From positions 62,001-126,000 of the forward strand of contig MCFH01000042.1 in NCBI GenBank assembly GCA_002104945.1: a stretch of DNA of 64,000 bases, given 5' to 3'. Numbering within the stretch: the stretch's first letter is position 1; every line of letters starts with the position of its first letter. This document shows positions 9,229 to 16,629 of this stretch, in pieces. The stretch is from Piromyces finnis finn. Lineage: Eukaryota; Fungi; Neocallimastigomycota. The position numbers and the translations under genes were made by a program. The notes under the pieces were generated by a model. It saw only the letters and a list, made by a program, of their open reading frames with translations. It had not been told where the DNA came from and did not search any database.

Positions 9229-11733
9229 TTAACATATTAATTTTTCTATATTATTAAATATGTGTTCATTTTTGCTGGCATTATCTAAATCATTTGAGAT
9301 TTTGTAATAATTCATACAATATTCATTTTCATCATATTTTAATTGTCTAAAGTTAAATTCTTTTATGAGAATATAACCATTAGAATATCCTTGTGGATCT
9401 CTTTCTTGTAAATCCTTTAATACTAAATCACTTCCAAAATATGGGTGCTTTAATATATTATTTTCTTCACGGTGGTGTCCTAATGTGATAGCCTTAATTC
9501 CATTATCAAATTCAACTTCATACTTTTGATTAATATCATCTTGAAGAATTAAATTAAACCAGGAATCAATTGAAACTTCTTTTGCATTGATAAGGTCGTT
9601 AGGGAAATACCAGGTATTATTAATAGCAATAGGGTGATATGGTGTTAAAAGAACTCCATTAATATCACACATATATGGCTTACTTAATTTATTTAAAGTT
9701 TGTTCAATCAAACATTGGACAATTGCATTATTATAAAGAATGTCTCCTTTCTTTAAGTCTCTAACACATTTTCTTTGTCCATTAGCCAATAATACAATAG
9801 CATCACCATTGAAACATCCACCATGACGATTCATGAAATTACCCATTTGAACTCTACTACCTGTACTTGTACTTGTATTGATAACTCCTCTTCTACTAGT
9901 TTTTGTAGATGGTGGTGGTAAATTGATAAATATTCTTTTGGCCAATAATCTGTAAGCATCAGCAACTTCTTGAGTGTAATATTGAAGAGATTGGTCTTTG
10001 AAATTACCACATTGTTCATATTGATGGAATCTTAAGAATGAATTAATGTAACATTCACCCCATTTTCCATAATAATCTTGTTGAATAGCTTTTTCAACTT
10101 GTCCATGATTAGGATCAGGATTTGTAATATCAATAAGTAAATCCTTTGCAAATTTGGTCTTATATTTCAATTCCTTTAATATTTTAATATATTCATCTAA
10201 AATTGTTTTTGCTTTTCCATTTTCTTCTTCATTTGAAGCTATTCCCTCAATTTTTATTATTTTATTAAGAGCAATGATAAATTTATTTCTTAAAATTTGA
10301 TTTAATAAACGTTCTTCATATTGAGTAGATTCTATTTCTTTTTCTTCAATAATAATATCAGTATCGATATTATTTATATCAATAGAAACAGCATTATCAT
10401 CTTCGGAATCAGAATCAGAGTCAAGTATTTCATCATCATCATCATCTTCTTCTTCTTCTTCATTTTTCTGAGCTTCTTTTAATTGTTTTTCTTTTTCATA
10501 CATATCATCAATAAAGGACTTAAGGTCTGGACTTTCATTAATAATAGGAACATCAATTATTTGATTAGTCATTGGAAGCTCAACTGTAACTTTTGTCTTA
10601 TCAATTAAATTTTTATCAATTTTAAATATAGCATTTCTATATGTTGCACGGTATAATGGACCAATTGTCATTGTTTTTTTAATATCATCACCTTGTTCAA
10701 CAATAACTTTAATAACTGGAGTGATAGTAGAAAGAAGACTTGCCATATAATTAATGAAAATAGTTCCTACCATTGTACCATCTGGACAATATCCATAAAT
10801 ACCATTTCCAAGATTTGCAATATCAATTAATAATTTTGGACCTACGTCATTACCAAATGAGAATGTTGATATCGTAAATTTATCATCACAAACTTTTAAT
10901 GTATCTTTCAATGTTTGGTATACACCGTCTGGTGGATTTATATTAGAATTACCATCAGTAAATACCATTAATGATTTTTGATAATTTTTATATGTAACAG
11001 ATTTTGATACATTAATTCCTTCTTCAATACCTCTCCAAATATTAGTACAACCACCTAAATTCATTTTATTTATACTGGAAATAACAGTTTCTTTGGCAGC
11101 TTTATCAATCAATAATGTTGGTTCCAAATGAATATTAGCATCATTACTAAATGTTACAATACTAAACATATCTTCTTTTCTTAATGATGATACAATTGCT
11201 TTGAGTGAATGTTTGACCAATTCAAGACGTGAAATATATTGTGTTTCCATATTTTCAATATTATTACAACAATTACATCCCATAGAACCAGAAATATCAA
11301 CTACACAAATTATACATGCAGGTGATGTTGTTTTTAATTTTTTTGGCTTCATCCATACATGAAGTGAGTCTTTACATAATCCTGAACTTTGTTCTTCTGA
11401 GATAATGCGTGATTTTATTTCTTCAAATTCTACTTCCTCTGCTTCAGTAGAAGCAGCAGAAAATGTTAAATTATTTATTTTTTCAGTAATATCATTTAAT
11501 TGAATATTATGTTCATTAACATAATTTTCTATTAAACTTTTTAAAGAATAATTTATAACTCCATCTTCAATTTTCATAGGAATCTTTGTTAAAGGAGAAG
11601 CGTGTGTTATTTCTAAAGCTTTTTTAATAGCTTCTTTTTCATATGTATGACCATCAGGCATAATTAAAGGTTCTTTCATAATATCCAAAGTAATTGGACA
11701 TAAATATTCATTTGGAATTTCGTCTTTATCCAT
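9229..11733 (-). CDS. U-box / VWA / Vwaint / Hint-Vint domain protein, 834 aa, intronless
   Basis: U-box EYLCPITLDIMKEPLIMPDGHTYEKEAI. VWA MIDAS motif VVDISGSMG. Vwaint-like block NHGQVEKAI...KWGECYINSFLRFHQYEQCGNFKDQSLQYY. Hint start GG/CFNGDAIVLLANG and LLTPYHPI. Vint-like C-terminus ITLGH...HPYFGS. Confidence 0.9.
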   Translation of the reverse strand: MDKDEIPNEYLCPITLDIMKEPLIMPDGHTYEKEAIKKALEITHASPLTKIPMKIEDGVINYSLKSLIENYVNEHNIQLNDITEKINNLTFSAASTEAEEVEFEEIKSRIISEEQSSGLCKDSLHVWMKPKKLKTTSPACIICVVDISGSMGCNCCNNIENMETQYISRLELVKHSLKAIVSSLRKEDMFSIVTFSNDANIHLEPTLLIDKAAKETVISSINKMNLGGCTNIWRGIEEGINVSKSVTYKNYQKSLMVFTDGNSNINPPDGVYQTLKDTLKVCDDKFTISTFSFGNDVGPKLLIDIANLGNGIYGYCPDGTMVGTIFINYMASLLSTITPVIKVIVEQGDDIKKTMTIGPLYRATYRNAIFKIDKNLIDKTKVTVELPMTNQIIDVPIINESPDLKSFIDDMYEKEKQLKEAQKNEEEEEDDDDDEILDSDSDSEDDNAVSIDINNIDTDIIIEEKEIESTQYEERLLNQILRNKFIIALNKIIKIEGIASNEEENGKAKTILDEYIKILKELKYKTKFAKDLLIDITNPDPNHGQVEKAIQQDYYGKWGECYINSFLRFHQYEQCGNFKDQSLQYYTQEVADAYRLLAKRIFINLPPPSTKTSRRGVINTSTSTGSRVQMGNFMNRHGGCFNGDAIVLLANGQRKCVRDLKKGDILYNNAIVQCLIEQTLNKLSKPYMCDINGVLLTPYHPIAINNTWYFPNDLINAKEVSIDSWFNLILQDDINQKYEVEFDNGIKAITLGHHREENNILKHPYFGSDLVLKDLQERDPQGYSNGYILIKEFNFRQLKYDENEYCMNYYKISNDLDNASKNEHIFNNIEKLIC

Positions 11734-13022: not shown

Positions 13023-13551
13023 ATGAAAAAGTTGGTTTTTTTATTGTTGCTCAATTTAACTTTTACAATAAATGGTATCTTTTCAGAATTTGTCGAGGAT
13101 TGTCGTATTGTAAATAAATTGTTGGGAGAATCTGACAATTACGATTGTTGCACTCATGGTAGAATTAATTGTAAAAATGGTTTCGTAACTGATATGTAAT
13201 ATAATAAAAAAGTTAACTTTTTTTTTTTTATTTCTACTTAATAATATAAAGAAATATTCTTTTACAAATATATATATATTTATTTTTTAAACAAAATTAA
13301 AAATATTCATTACTATTCTTTTTATTTTCATTAAAAAAAAAAAAAAAGAATGATATCTGATAATAAAAAGTCAAGTGGTTTTATTCCACCAGAAATTGGC
13401 AATTTATCAAAATTGGAATGGCTGTAAAGAATTGATAATTATTATCATTATTATTATTTTTAAATTGTATTCTAATAATCAAATTTTTAAAATTTTCTTA
13501 ATATAATTAAAAATATTCATTCATTACTTTTTTTTTTATTATTTTATCTCT

Positions 13552-13614
<63 letters not shown>

Positions 13615-15491
13615 AATCTCTCTAATAATAATTTAAGTGGTTCCATTCCGCCAGAACTTGGAAATTTATCAAATTTAAAAGTTTTGTAATAAACAAATAA
13701 ACAAATTTATAAAATTATTATTTTTAAATTGTATTTTTTTTTTTAATTTTCTTTAATATAATTAAAAATATTCATTCATTACTATTCTTTTTATTTATTT
13801 TTTCTTAAAAAAAAAAAAAAAGAAAGCTCTCCGCAAATAATTTAAGTGGTTCTATTCCACCTGAACTTGGAAAATTAACAAATTTAATAGATTTGTAAGG
13901 AATTGATAATTATTATTATTATTGTTTTTAAATTGTATTCTAATAATCTAATTTTTAATTTTTTAAAATAATTAAAAATATTCATTACTTTTCTTTTTAT
14001 TTATTTATTTTTTCTTAAAAAAAAAAAGATACCTCGATAAAAATAATTTAAGTGGTTCCATTCCACCAGAAATTGGCAATTTATCAAATTTATTTTATAT
14101 GTAAAGAATTGATATTATTATTATTATTTTAATTATATTCTAATTTTTTAATTCTTTAAATATAATATAATTAAAAAATATTCATTACTATTCTTTTTAT
14201 TTTTTCTTTTCTTAAAAAAAAAAAGATATCTCAGTAATAATAACTTTAGTGGTTTTATTCCACCTGAATTTGGAAAATTAACAAATTTGAAAGAATTGTA
14301 AAGAATTGATAACTATTATTATTATAATTATTTTTAAATTGTATTCTAATCTAATTTTTAATTTTTTTTTTTTTTTTTTTTTAATATAATTAAAAATATT
14401 CATTCATTACTGTTCCTTTTATTTATTTATTTTTTCTTAAAAAAAAGATACTTCGATAATAATAATTTAAGTGGTTCCATTCCATCTGAACTTGGAAAAT
14501 TAACAAACTTGAATAATTTGTAATAATTAAATTTATAAAATATTTTATATATAAAGTTTTTATGCTTTTATATTTATTTTTTTTTGTATATAAAATCACT
14601 CATGATGCATTAAAAAACAACTAAATTTCAATATTTTTTTTTTTCAACTACAATTATAATTTAAAAAAAAAAAAAAAAAGAAATATTAGTAATAACGGAT
14701 TTAGTGGTTCTATACCTCAAGAAATATTAAATAATGACGCTTTGGAATTGTAAGTACTTTACTTTTTTTGATTATTTTATATTATTTATTACATAATAGT
14801 ATTAAATAGTTTATATTTATAATGTTGTTAAAACATTCATTTTCATTCAAATATTTATTATTTAATATAATATAGTATTTATGATAATTATAATGATAGA
14901 AACAAACAAGTTGTAGAAAAAGAGGAAAAGAATGATTTAAACAAAGATAATGATATAAATAAAGATGATAAACCAAATAAGGAAACTGATGAAAATAAAA
15001 GTAATGATTTAAATAAAGAGGCTAAATCCAATAGAGGCGGTTTTTCATCTCTAATAATAGGCATTGTGTTTGGAATAATTAGTATTGTTTTGTCCATACT
15101 ATTATTCCTAGTTTTAAGAAAAAATAAAAATTTAAAAAAGAAAAATAATGAAAACAATAGTTTTTCTATTTTAAATAATGTTCACATTGACCCACCTTCA
15201 ATTTCTGGAAATGCAGAAAGTACAACTAATCCTCCTGATATAGCTTTTACTCCGCTTCATTCCTCTAAAAATAAATTTACTAATATTACTACTACTGATA
15301 TTGATAATGATAATATTAATAATAATAATAGCAATAATAATGATAGTTATGATAATAGTAATAATGAGAAGTTTTTAAATAATGAAAATAATAATAATAA
15401 TAATAATACTATCAATGGAAGAGAAGATTTACCTCCAAGTTATGAAGACGTATTAAATGAAAATTGTGAAAATAACACTGGTAATATGTAA
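13023..15491 (+). CDS. Single-pass LRR receptor-like membrane protein (plant-type SGxIP LRRs), 430 aa, 9 exons, cytoplasmic PPSY motif
   Basis: Exons 13023-13195 (signal peptide and Cys cap), 13349-13423, 13614-13685, 13823-13894, 14029-14100, 14226-14297, 14448-14519, 14681-14749 and 14876-15491. All introns are phase 2. Each internal exon is one LxxNxLSGSIPPELGxLxNL repeat. The last exon encodes a stalk, TM LIIGIVFGIISIVLSILLFLVL, RKNK and DLPPSYEDVL. Confidence 0.9.
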
Positions 15492-16629
15492 GGCTTCAAT
15501 CTCTAATTAAAATTTAAAAAATGAAGAAAATAAAAAATCACTTCATTCCTTAAGAAAATAAAAAAAAAAAAAAAAGTAATTTTCAAATTTTGATTATTAT
15601 GATTAATCAAAAATTGAAAAATAAAAAATAGAAAAAATAAATAAATAAATAGAAGAAGTCTATTCTCTTCCTAGTCTAATAAAAAATAGAACGTACACAT
15701 TGAAAGTATGTGATGACAATGAGGTCATTAAATTCCATTGGAGAAAAGGGTATACTTCCAAGTTATGAAGATGTTTTAAATGAAGATGGAAAGCATAACA
15801 CAAAAATATTTTTACAGTCTGACGATACGATAAATTCAAAATTCAAATGATAAAAAATAAAGAACCGCTTCATTCATTTAACTTTTAAATATTATGATGA
15901 ATCAAGAAGTAAGAAAGAAAAAAAAAATAGAAAAAATACTTTGAAAGTATAAAAACAATAATAATAACTGCATAGTAAAATAATAAAAAAGAAAGAAAAT
16001 AAAAAGAAATAAAAAGAAACAATAAAAAAGGTGATATAATAAAACAAAAACAAATAAAACAAAAATAAAAATATAAATATAAAAAAAATACTTTAACTTT
16101 ATAAATTGAAAGATCTTTTATTATTATAGTTCTGTTTTATTTTTTTTATTTTCAATATTAAAATAAAAACTAGTATCTTTATATTTTTTTAATAGAAAAA
16201 AAAAATTTCAATATTGTTGTATTTTAATGGTTTTAAAGAGTTTATAAAATCACACAGTGGATACACCTTTTTATTTATTTTAAAATGAAATATTGAAAAA
16301 ATAAATCTTTTTTTATAACAAAAAATTATATTATATTTATTTATGATTTGAATGGGCTTTTTTTTATTTTTTGAAAAAACAACTACAGGATATAATAAAA
16401 GTAATTATGAAAAAGATAGTATAAATATAGTATATGGATAGGTAGTTTCATCATTCAAATGATTCTATCTAACTTTATAATATGTTGCAATATTCATTAT
16501 ACAATACTCATTTTTATAAAGTTTTCATTTTCATCTTTTTCATGAATTTAAATCAATCCTCAATCTCATAACTATAACTTTTTTTAAAATCATACACACA
16601 CACAAAACATTATTTATATAAAATAAAAA

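Follow-up and report, generated by a model that had tools for sequence, protein, structure and literature searches.

The stretch of DNA analysed here (64 kb, hereafter the window) belongs to contig MCFH01000042.1 (C170) of the fungus Piromyces finnis and is very AT-rich, with a GC content of 12-34% per 1-kb window. Positions 13023-15491 on its + strand hold a gene of nine exons and eight introns, the central part of which is a row of exons that encode one leucine-rich repeat (LRR) each. We consider it probable that this is an intact germline gene for a membrane-anchored LRR surface protein, built from cassettes and belonging to a large and old family. Our analysis established the anatomy of the gene, the size of the family, the duplication of the cassettes, the old age of the design, and the hypervariability of the codons at the exon junctions.

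One repeat per exon

The exons were read directly from the sequence (Table 1). A first-pass annotation of this DNA had described an array of symmetric LRR exons, and re-reading the exon map confirmed it: the seven internal exons measure 75 nt, 72 nt (five times), and 69 nt and encode one plant-type LRR each, all eight introns are in phase 2 and all have GT..AG borders. The residues across the junctions are also those quoted earlier, i.e., EWL/NLSN, KVL/KLSA, IDL/YLDK, FYI/YLSN, KEL/YFDN, and NNL/NISN. The codon split by an intron always specifies Leu or Ile (CT/A, TT/A, or AT/A, where the slash marks the intron). The repeat in each internal exon follows the pattern xLSNNNLSGSIPPELGxLxNLxx, and in the five 72-nt exons the split Leu comes after it. 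The repeat meets the consensus of the plant-specific (PS) type of LRR, LxxLxLxxNxL(S/T)GxIPxxLGxLxx, with its 24-residue period. In the model we propose, the phase-2 intron would split the codon of the fourth-position Leu of LxxLxLxx in every LRR of the family.

The splice sites have features of their own. All eight donors read GTAA in phase 2, so that a retained intron would read xxG TAA and stop at once. In introns 1-7, the acceptor AG is preceded not by pyrimidines, but by a run of A that follows a T-rich tract. This run reaches 58 A in intron 2 (window positions 13559-13616) and 10-20 A in the others. Many introns of the paralogs likewise end in AAAAAG or AAATAG.

Exon and intron were copied as a unit

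Tandem Repeats Finder identified between positions 13602 and 14523 a period of 206 (4.4 copies, 76% match) and a second period of 403 (2.2 copies, 80% match). The intron alignment shows homology among introns 2-6, extending to the 3' part of intron 1, but none for introns 7 and 8. A motif, AAAAATATTCATT..ACT, has six copies in the 64-kb window, all on the + strand and exclusively in introns 1-6. Among the upstream intron segments of paralogous LRR exons, CATTAC is present in only 7 of 160. Hence, the motif is private to this gene, and the introns resemble each other because they were duplicated; neither a splicing signal nor AT-rich sequence by chance would account for it. The earlier claim that exon and intron were copied as one unit is supported.

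To order the duplications, we used a tree of the individual LRR units (positions 13710-13760 were left out of this tree and of the unit-level divergence analyses). In it, exons 4 and 6 are nearest relatives, as are exons 5 and 7, which argues for the duplication of a block of two units and fits the 403-bp period. The latest event was the copying of a two-unit block of about 403 bp, in which exons 4 and 5 gave rise to exons 6 and 7. Given the symmetry of the exons, whole repeats would be added or removed in frame by unequal crossing-over from one cassette to another. In this way, the gene probably gained at least four units, the latest of them as a two-unit block.

The predicted protein

The features of the protein come from inspection and from Pfam searches run exon by exon, not on the joined protein. 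They suggest that the product is, with good probability, a type I surface protein of 430 residues and of the receptor-like protein (RLP) kind, presumably exposed at the cell surface. From its N- to its C-terminus, it would have a signal-like segment, a cap with four cysteines, seven LRRs of 24 residues, a charged linker, a single transmembrane (TM) helix, and a tail. The N-terminus (MKKLVFLLLLNLTFTINGIFS) is, by inspection, hydrophobic, and it is conserved in 13 paralogs. When the first exons of 13 paralogs are aligned, cysteines C27, C42, C43, and C50 are invariant and all the exons end at GTAAT in phase 2. The Pfam profile LRRNT_2 (PF08263) had no match in ten first exons at E <= 1, and the comparison by hhalign of the cap profile with LRRNT_2-type caps gave a weak match over CCxxxG[IV]xC (42% probability, E 2.6e-4). 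A look-up of exon 1 in the Atlas yielded no usable match, all scores being 0.80.

Single exons score weakly with LRR_1 (13.6-20.8 bits), and two of them reach the cut-off of 20.6 bits. For comparison, P0002, the database model of a paralog on contig C197, scores 56.7 bits with LRR_1 and 40.8 bits with LRR_8, and LRR_4 is also among the Pfam matches of the family. The best matches of P0002 in the PDB are the ectodomains of the plant LRR receptor kinases (LRR-RKs) GSO1, FLS2, and PEPR1. The ligand would be contacted by the concave face of the repeats.

The linker that follows the LRRs is rich in Lys, Asp, and Glu. The TM helix and the RKNKNLKKK next to it suggest a type I topology, as far as this can be predicted from sequence. 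The tail has about 125 residues, is Asn-rich and of low complexity, and carries DLPPSYEDVL near its end. A PPSY or LPSY motif is kept in the tails of paralogs (LPSYEDIL on C197, DLPPSYNEVI on C165), and it may be recognised by a WW-domain ligase of the Rsp5/NEDD4 type for endocytic turnover. Pfam has no kinase or other domain above the cut-off in the 204-residue last exon, nor a kinase or signalling domain in P0001 (another C197 paralog), P0002, and P0062. The first-pass annotation had listed a signal peptide, a TM segment, a PPSY tail, and no kinase; on inspection, the N-terminus is hydrophobic and a predicted TM helix and the PPSY tail are present, and Pfam found no kinase or other domain in the tail.

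Table 1. Features of the LRR gene and its surroundings, in window coordinates.
Feature	Position	Strand	Description
Exon 1	13023..13195	+	173 nt, ends in phase 2; signal-like segment and four-cysteine cap
Hydrophobic signal-like N-terminal segment	~13023-13085	+	Within exon 1
Four-cysteine cap ahead of the first repeat	13101-13172	+	Within exon 1
Exon 2, first LRR (MISDNKKSSGFIPPEIGNLSKLEW)	13349..13423	+	75 nt, phase 2 on both sides
Exon 3, one LRR (NLSNNNLSGSIPPELGNLSNLKV)	13614..13685	+	72 nt; Pfam LRR_1 20.8 bits (cut-off 20.6)
Exon 4, one LRR	13823..13894	+	72 nt; nearest relative in the unit tree is exon 6
Exon 5, one LRR	14029..14100	+	72 nt; nearest relative in the unit tree is exon 7
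Exon 6, one LRR	14226..14297	+	72 nt; LRR_1 20.7 bits
Exon 7, one LRR	14448..14519	+	72 nt
Exon 8, terminal LRR of distinct type (NISNNGFSGSIPQEILNNDALE)	14681..14749	+	69 nt
Exon 9, charged linker, TM helix, Asn-rich cytoplasmic tail, stop codon	14876..15491	+	616 nt
Predicted single TM helix (FSSLIIGIVFGIISIVLSILLFLVL)	15042..15116	+	25 hydrophobic residues, then RKNKNLKKK; by inspection
PPSY, PPxY-type motif in DLPPSYEDVL	15432..15443	+	By inspection
Tandem array of exon-plus-intron cassettes	13279..14523	+	Unit of ~206 bp; Tandem Repeats Finder, alignment, unit tree, private intron motif
Relic of a duplicated gene end	15719..15850	+	Short open reading frame ending ...GILPSYEDVLNEDGKHN... 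/ ...GILPSYEDVLNEDGKHNTKIF..., ~230 nt past the stop codon

A large family in P. finnis

We searched the P. finnis genome (56.46 Mb in 232 contigs) for relatives of the gene. At the DNA level, a stretch covering two of its units matches at least 126 times, on 13 or more contigs. With a first-exon profile, 63 places were found, around 45 of them at full length; two clusters on contig C177 and a third on C196 account for most of the places. Near-identical copies on the small contigs C23, C63, C93, and C75 are among the matches. A fair estimate from these searches is a family of about 45-60 genes sharing the four-cysteine cap exon. The first-pass annotation had expected a multigene family of kinase-free, receptor-like surface proteins, and this is what the 45-60 genes represent, for P. 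finnis only.

The analysis of the family rests on 50 loci, merged into 20 regions, and not on whole clusters. The repeat profile identified 192 LRR units in these regions, 152 of which are exact 72-nt AG..GT exons in phase 2 on both sides, and most of the remaining units, with 66, 69, or 75 nt, are the first or last repeat of their gene. The two database models from C197 use the same exon junctions as our gene, and the distinct type of terminal LRR in exon 8 is found at the same position in the paralogs on C197, C23, C63, and C3. The tail encoded by exon 9 is 85% identical to that of the C3 copy and 51-67% identical to those of the C197 and C23 copies. The paralog proteins that match the tail exon carry the name Piromyces finnis BCR36DRAFT, and none was found outside P. 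finnis within the protein length range searched. In other subfamilies, a fixed LRR exon of 66 nt comes last, and the next exon encodes a TM helix plus a short tail that differs from ours.

The closest relative is the copy on C3 (G000:C3:56200-58170), which is colinear with our gene and 84.6% identical from intron 6 to the 3' untranslated region. One of its introns contains an (ATT)n tract of about 300 nt, the unit that corresponds to exon 7 is interrupted by an in-frame TAA, a unit of 81 nt has an internal duplication of 9 nt, and the first exon is missing. The copy is probably partial and dead. The closest relatives differ in the number of LRR units, with seven in our gene, five on C197, and four on C3 (one of them broken). 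Repeat number does change between close relatives, with whole cassettes being gained and lost.

One five-repeat gene is present three times on C197 (134-154 kb, one copy inverted) and again on C23 (15-23 kb) and C63 (18-23 kb), where the C63 copy has several stops. Recent segmental duplication may explain these copies, or else the contigs may be redundant or represent haplotypes.

The same design in a second phylum

The LRR matches to P0001 include two proteins of Catenaria anguillulae, BCR44DRAFT_1437553 (P0061) and BCR44DRAFT_1444112 (P0085), and we mapped both back onto their own genes (L051 and L053). The exons of L051 measure 74, 72, 75, 72 (five times), and 54 nt, and those of L053 measure 122, 72 (seven times), and 54 nt. 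Every LRR exon in them is in phase 2 on both sides, and the Leu codon that is split is the same as in P. finnis (TT/G or TT/A). The proteins also share with ours a Cys cap (CCxWxGVxC), LRRs of the plant type, a single TM helix, and a short tail, and Pfam finds no kinase in them. They differ in coming from another phylum and a GC-rich genome, in having a Cys-rich membrane-proximal region (absent in the P. finnis gene), and in having tails without PPxY. Databases call them kinases, by similarity only. Its presence in both Blastocladiomycota and Neocallimastigomycota means that the design was inherited and is old, and that it did not arise recently in the gut fungi.

Many bacterial and plant proteins share the repeat, and we considered a horizontal transfer from bacteria or plants; as a recent event it is not favoured, since the two fungal phyla share the intron position. 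A second LRR gene adjoins P0061 in L051 (4531-5007).

In young arrays, codons beside the introns are more diverged than the introns

The 24 nt at the ends of each exon encode positions x2, x3, x5, x7, and x8 of LxxLxLxx, on the concave face of the repeat. In the latest duplication of our gene, 18 of 48 sites differ at the exon ends and 11 of 96 at the exon centres, so that the constant scaffold and variable junction residues noted in the first-pass annotation are found again. The introns differ at 5-12% of their sites under reasonable gap penalties (Fisher p 3e-8 to 1.5e-4). Omega (the ratio dN/dS) is 0.25 on the scaffold codons.

One of the two Catenaria genes provides a second case, a tandem array of exon-plus-intron units whose junction codons are hypervariable. 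At 663-1856 of L053 (MCFL01000077.1), a 161-bp LRR cassette is repeated in 7.4 copies with 91% identity and no indels. Variation affects 5 of 89 columns in the introns (pi 0.02), 6 of 48 columns in the exon centres (pi 0.055), and 14 of the 24 columns at the exon ends (pi 0.34; Fisher 5e-8). The proportion of nonsynonymous differences (pN) is 0.58 on the concave codons, against a proportion of synonymous differences (pS) of 0.076 on the scaffold codons. We also tried to read the variants at the ends of these exons as products of recombination (four-gamete test), and dropped this because the combinations seen need no recombination.

Overall, the junction codons are 3-6 times more diverged than the adjoining introns in our gene and about 17 times in the Catenaria array. 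Relaxed constraint cannot push divergence above the neutral rate. Hence, an excess over the introns implies either positive selection after duplication or a homogenisation that was tolerated everywhere except at these residues. Under both options, the concave face was selected to differ between repeats, which supports a role in ligand binding. The data point to selection for different binding residues after the cassettes were duplicated, as far as can be judged from the sequences. In the mechanism we propose, the five concave codons flanking the intron would, after duplication, have diverged much faster than introns and scaffold, or would have stayed different amid homogenisation. Either way, each repeat would end up with its own ligand-contact residues.

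This does not extend to all members of the family. Between three paralogs on C177, the five codons of the concave face have an omega of 0.29-0.44 and the other codons one of 0.38-0.46, and the binding face there is conserved under purifying selection. The diversifying binding face of the first-pass annotation is therefore retained for the young arrays (our gene and that of Catenaria) and not for these three paralogs.

Transcript hints and the question of isoforms

In four sequencing runs from three studies, which share one organism code and are guessed to be RNA, we found 0.37-0.40 of the 31-mers sampled from the gene. The expected share is 0.419 if only exons are present and 0.299 if only the first and last exons are. 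The observed values are consistent with a spliced, near full-length transcript, and are no proof of it.

Symmetric exons could also serve a different purpose, namely isoform diversity, where regulated or stochastic skipping of exons yields different sets of repeats from one gene. The symmetry is confirmed here, modular exons are a documented precondition for alternative splicing (PMC6642158, PMC11378527), and exon skipping has been reported for human NLRP3 (PMC6642158) and proposed for the ROCO genes of a brown alga. The 31-mer share is slightly under the value for all exons, and the models P0001 and P0002, which are near-identical paralogs, differ by six residues at one exon end. However, the share is near that of the full-length transcript and such a small shortfall has many trivial causes, the difference between the two models may be an artefact of gene modelling, and the GTAA donors, which make retained introns stop, are uninformative on skipping. 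We regard isoform diversity as an improbable explanation.

No sign of ongoing exon shuffling

The first-pass annotation had put the cassettes forward as a candidate exon-shuffling recognition system. The case for shuffling in the ROCO genes of Ectocarpus (Zambounis et al. 2012, PMC3341825) rests on reverse-strand exons and inactivated exons inside introns, and we took our criteria from it. Germline shuffling of this kind, if ongoing, would move, invert, and exchange exons between genes and produce mosaic genes. The different unit numbers of the closest relatives (seven here, five on C197, four on C3) speak for it, and so does exon 3, which has as its nearest relative in the unit tree a unit of another gene.

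This last link is distant (tree distance 0.82), and several observations are against shuffling. A six-frame profile scan of the 20 regions found no LRR exons on the reverse strand or embedded in introns, and all 192 units are on the coding strand of their own gene. Only three of the 192 are broken (C3:56930, C63:23026, C197:147629), all of them in dead-looking copies. The exon order of the three tandem C177 paralogs matches position by position over nine repeats, and the types of the first and terminal exons are fixed in position. In most genes, the nearest relative of a unit is the same position in another gene, as expected from the duplication of whole genes. As to unit number, C170 and C3 differ upstream of their colinear part, and the C3 copy, with its in-frame stop and missing first exon, looks dead rather than reshuffled.

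We thus see no sign of programmed or ongoing exchange of exons, and the sequences support neither programmed shuffling nor an active system that swaps or skips exons. Against the proposal stand the absence of reverse-strand and intron-embedded exons from the 20 regions, the order kept in three paralogs, the fixed terminal exon, and the ancient design, and ongoing shuffling between genes strikes us as very unlikely.

Decay, somatic assembly, and the weight of the evidence

A silent or decaying gene would explain the variable junctions by relaxed constraint on a young, solitary duplicate. The gene is indeed solitary, a relic of a gene end is just downstream, the closest relative on C3 is broken, and no protein of this gene is among the database matches listed. 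Yet none of its nine exons is interrupted and the splice sites are canonical, omega on the scaffold codons is 0.25, the junction codons exceed the intron rate 3-6 fold, which is beyond what relaxation can do, and the 31-mer share in four runs fits a spliced transcript. There is accordingly little to recommend decay. That cassettes are joined somatically into a variable receptor, as happens with the VLR genes of lampreys, is hardly credible: the likeness is a general one of tandem LRR cassettes, whereas our gene reads through in frame from cap to tail in the germline and lacks no part, there are no flanking banks of partial cassettes in the window (the profile found only the seven units on C170), and no rearranged forms are known.

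Some points weigh against an intact receptor gene with a selected binding face. The divergence of introns in such an AT-rich array depends on the gap penalties, and very strict ones break the alignment and give p = 0.07. Within the gene, omega on the concave codons is about 1.1 with dN near saturation, and for this reason positive selection is argued here from the comparison with introns and not from omega alone. The signal peptide and TM helix were judged by eye, the hint of splicing and expression comes from the 31-mer share in runs guessed to be RNA, and the matches listed from the databases include no protein model of this exact gene.

Genomic neighbourhood

The gene stands alone, apart from the C177 and C196 clusters, and its neighbours are a U-box/VWA/Vint gene and PRMT1. 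The former is the upstream neighbour and has no relation to the LRR gene; its single open reading frame of 834 residues, at window positions 9229-11733 (- strand), encodes U-box, VWA, Vwaint, and Vint (Hint) domains. The relic downstream of the gene (15719-15850) matches the region of the tail motif of the C3 copy.

Comparison with known systems

The ROCO 'type I' LRR arrays of Ectocarpus (PMC3341825) resemble the genes described here in having one plant-like 24-residue LRR per symmetric 72-nt exon, and in forming clustered multigene families with variable repeat number and variable exposed residues. They differ in being cytosolic GTPases and in the register of the exon (GxxP...NxLx). The LRR genes of Tetrahymena (Xiong et al. 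2019, PMC6564038) have, like ours, exons of equal length, almost only phase-2 introns (>96%), a clonal expansion of exon plus intron, and a junction codon shared by neighbouring exons, but the exons are of 90 nt, the repeat has 30 residues, the genes number in the thousands, and there is a link to an element like a long interspersed nuclear element (LINE). The design was claimed to be unique to Tetrahymena (PMC6564038). The fungal genes show that uniform arrays of phase-2 LRR exons are not.

The RLPs and LRR-RK ectodomains of plants (GSO1, FLS2, PEPR1, TMM) have the same 24-residue repeat, LxxLxLxxNxLSGxIPxxLGxLxx, and RLPs the same layout of ectodomain, TM helix, and short tail. The P. finnis gene differs from them in lacking a Pfam LRRNT_2 match and a Cys C-terminal cap, and in its fungal host. 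Intron-rich genes of plant LRR receptor-like kinases carry mostly phase-2 introns (PMC4654520), and the plant 'ERECTA-like' match that we picked for the comparison of introns turned out to be an intronless gene. Human NLRP3 (Hoss et al. 2019, PMC6642158) also has symmetric LRR exons that can be skipped in frame, with the differences that its LRRs are of the RI type, two per exon, and cytosolic, and that skipping is demonstrated for NLRP3 and not here.

We found no paper on such an LRR family in anaerobic fungi. The sole trace in the literature is a Pecoramyces 'LRR receptor-like' gene that is among the most down-regulated in co-culture with a methanogen (PMC6414434). It is a common statement that LRR-type surface receptors are missing from fungi. 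Soanes and Talbot (2010) reported that proteins with LRRs and a TM helix are almost absent from 49 fungal genomes, among which no gut fungus was sampled (PMC2939053).

What the family may mean for early fungi

The large family of LRR-plus-TM proteins in P. finnis contradicts the 2010 report that fungi are without such receptors. In P. finnis alone, an LRR ectodomain is encoded by some 45-60 genes, many of which also encode a membrane anchor, and the same exon design is present in a second phylum. We tentatively suggest that zoosporic fungi (Neocallimastigomycota and Blastocladiomycota) possess old and expanding plant-like surface LRR receptors, in whose genes the intron would interrupt the ligand-contacting strand at its middle and duplication or homogenisation together with selection would keep the five residues flanking the junction hypervariable and introns and scaffold near-identical. 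The idea is a speculative one. If it is true, fungi would have candidate surface pattern-recognition receptors after all, under a regime of germline diversification like that of plant immune RLPs.

The arrays themselves are a natural case in which the introns act as an internal neutral yardstick and the ligand-contact codons are the sole fast-changing part of freshly made cassettes. They open two questions, one on the ligands that such proteins may meet in the rumen, be they of the plant wall, bacteria, methanogens, or the host, the other on the recognition by surface LRRs in early fungi.

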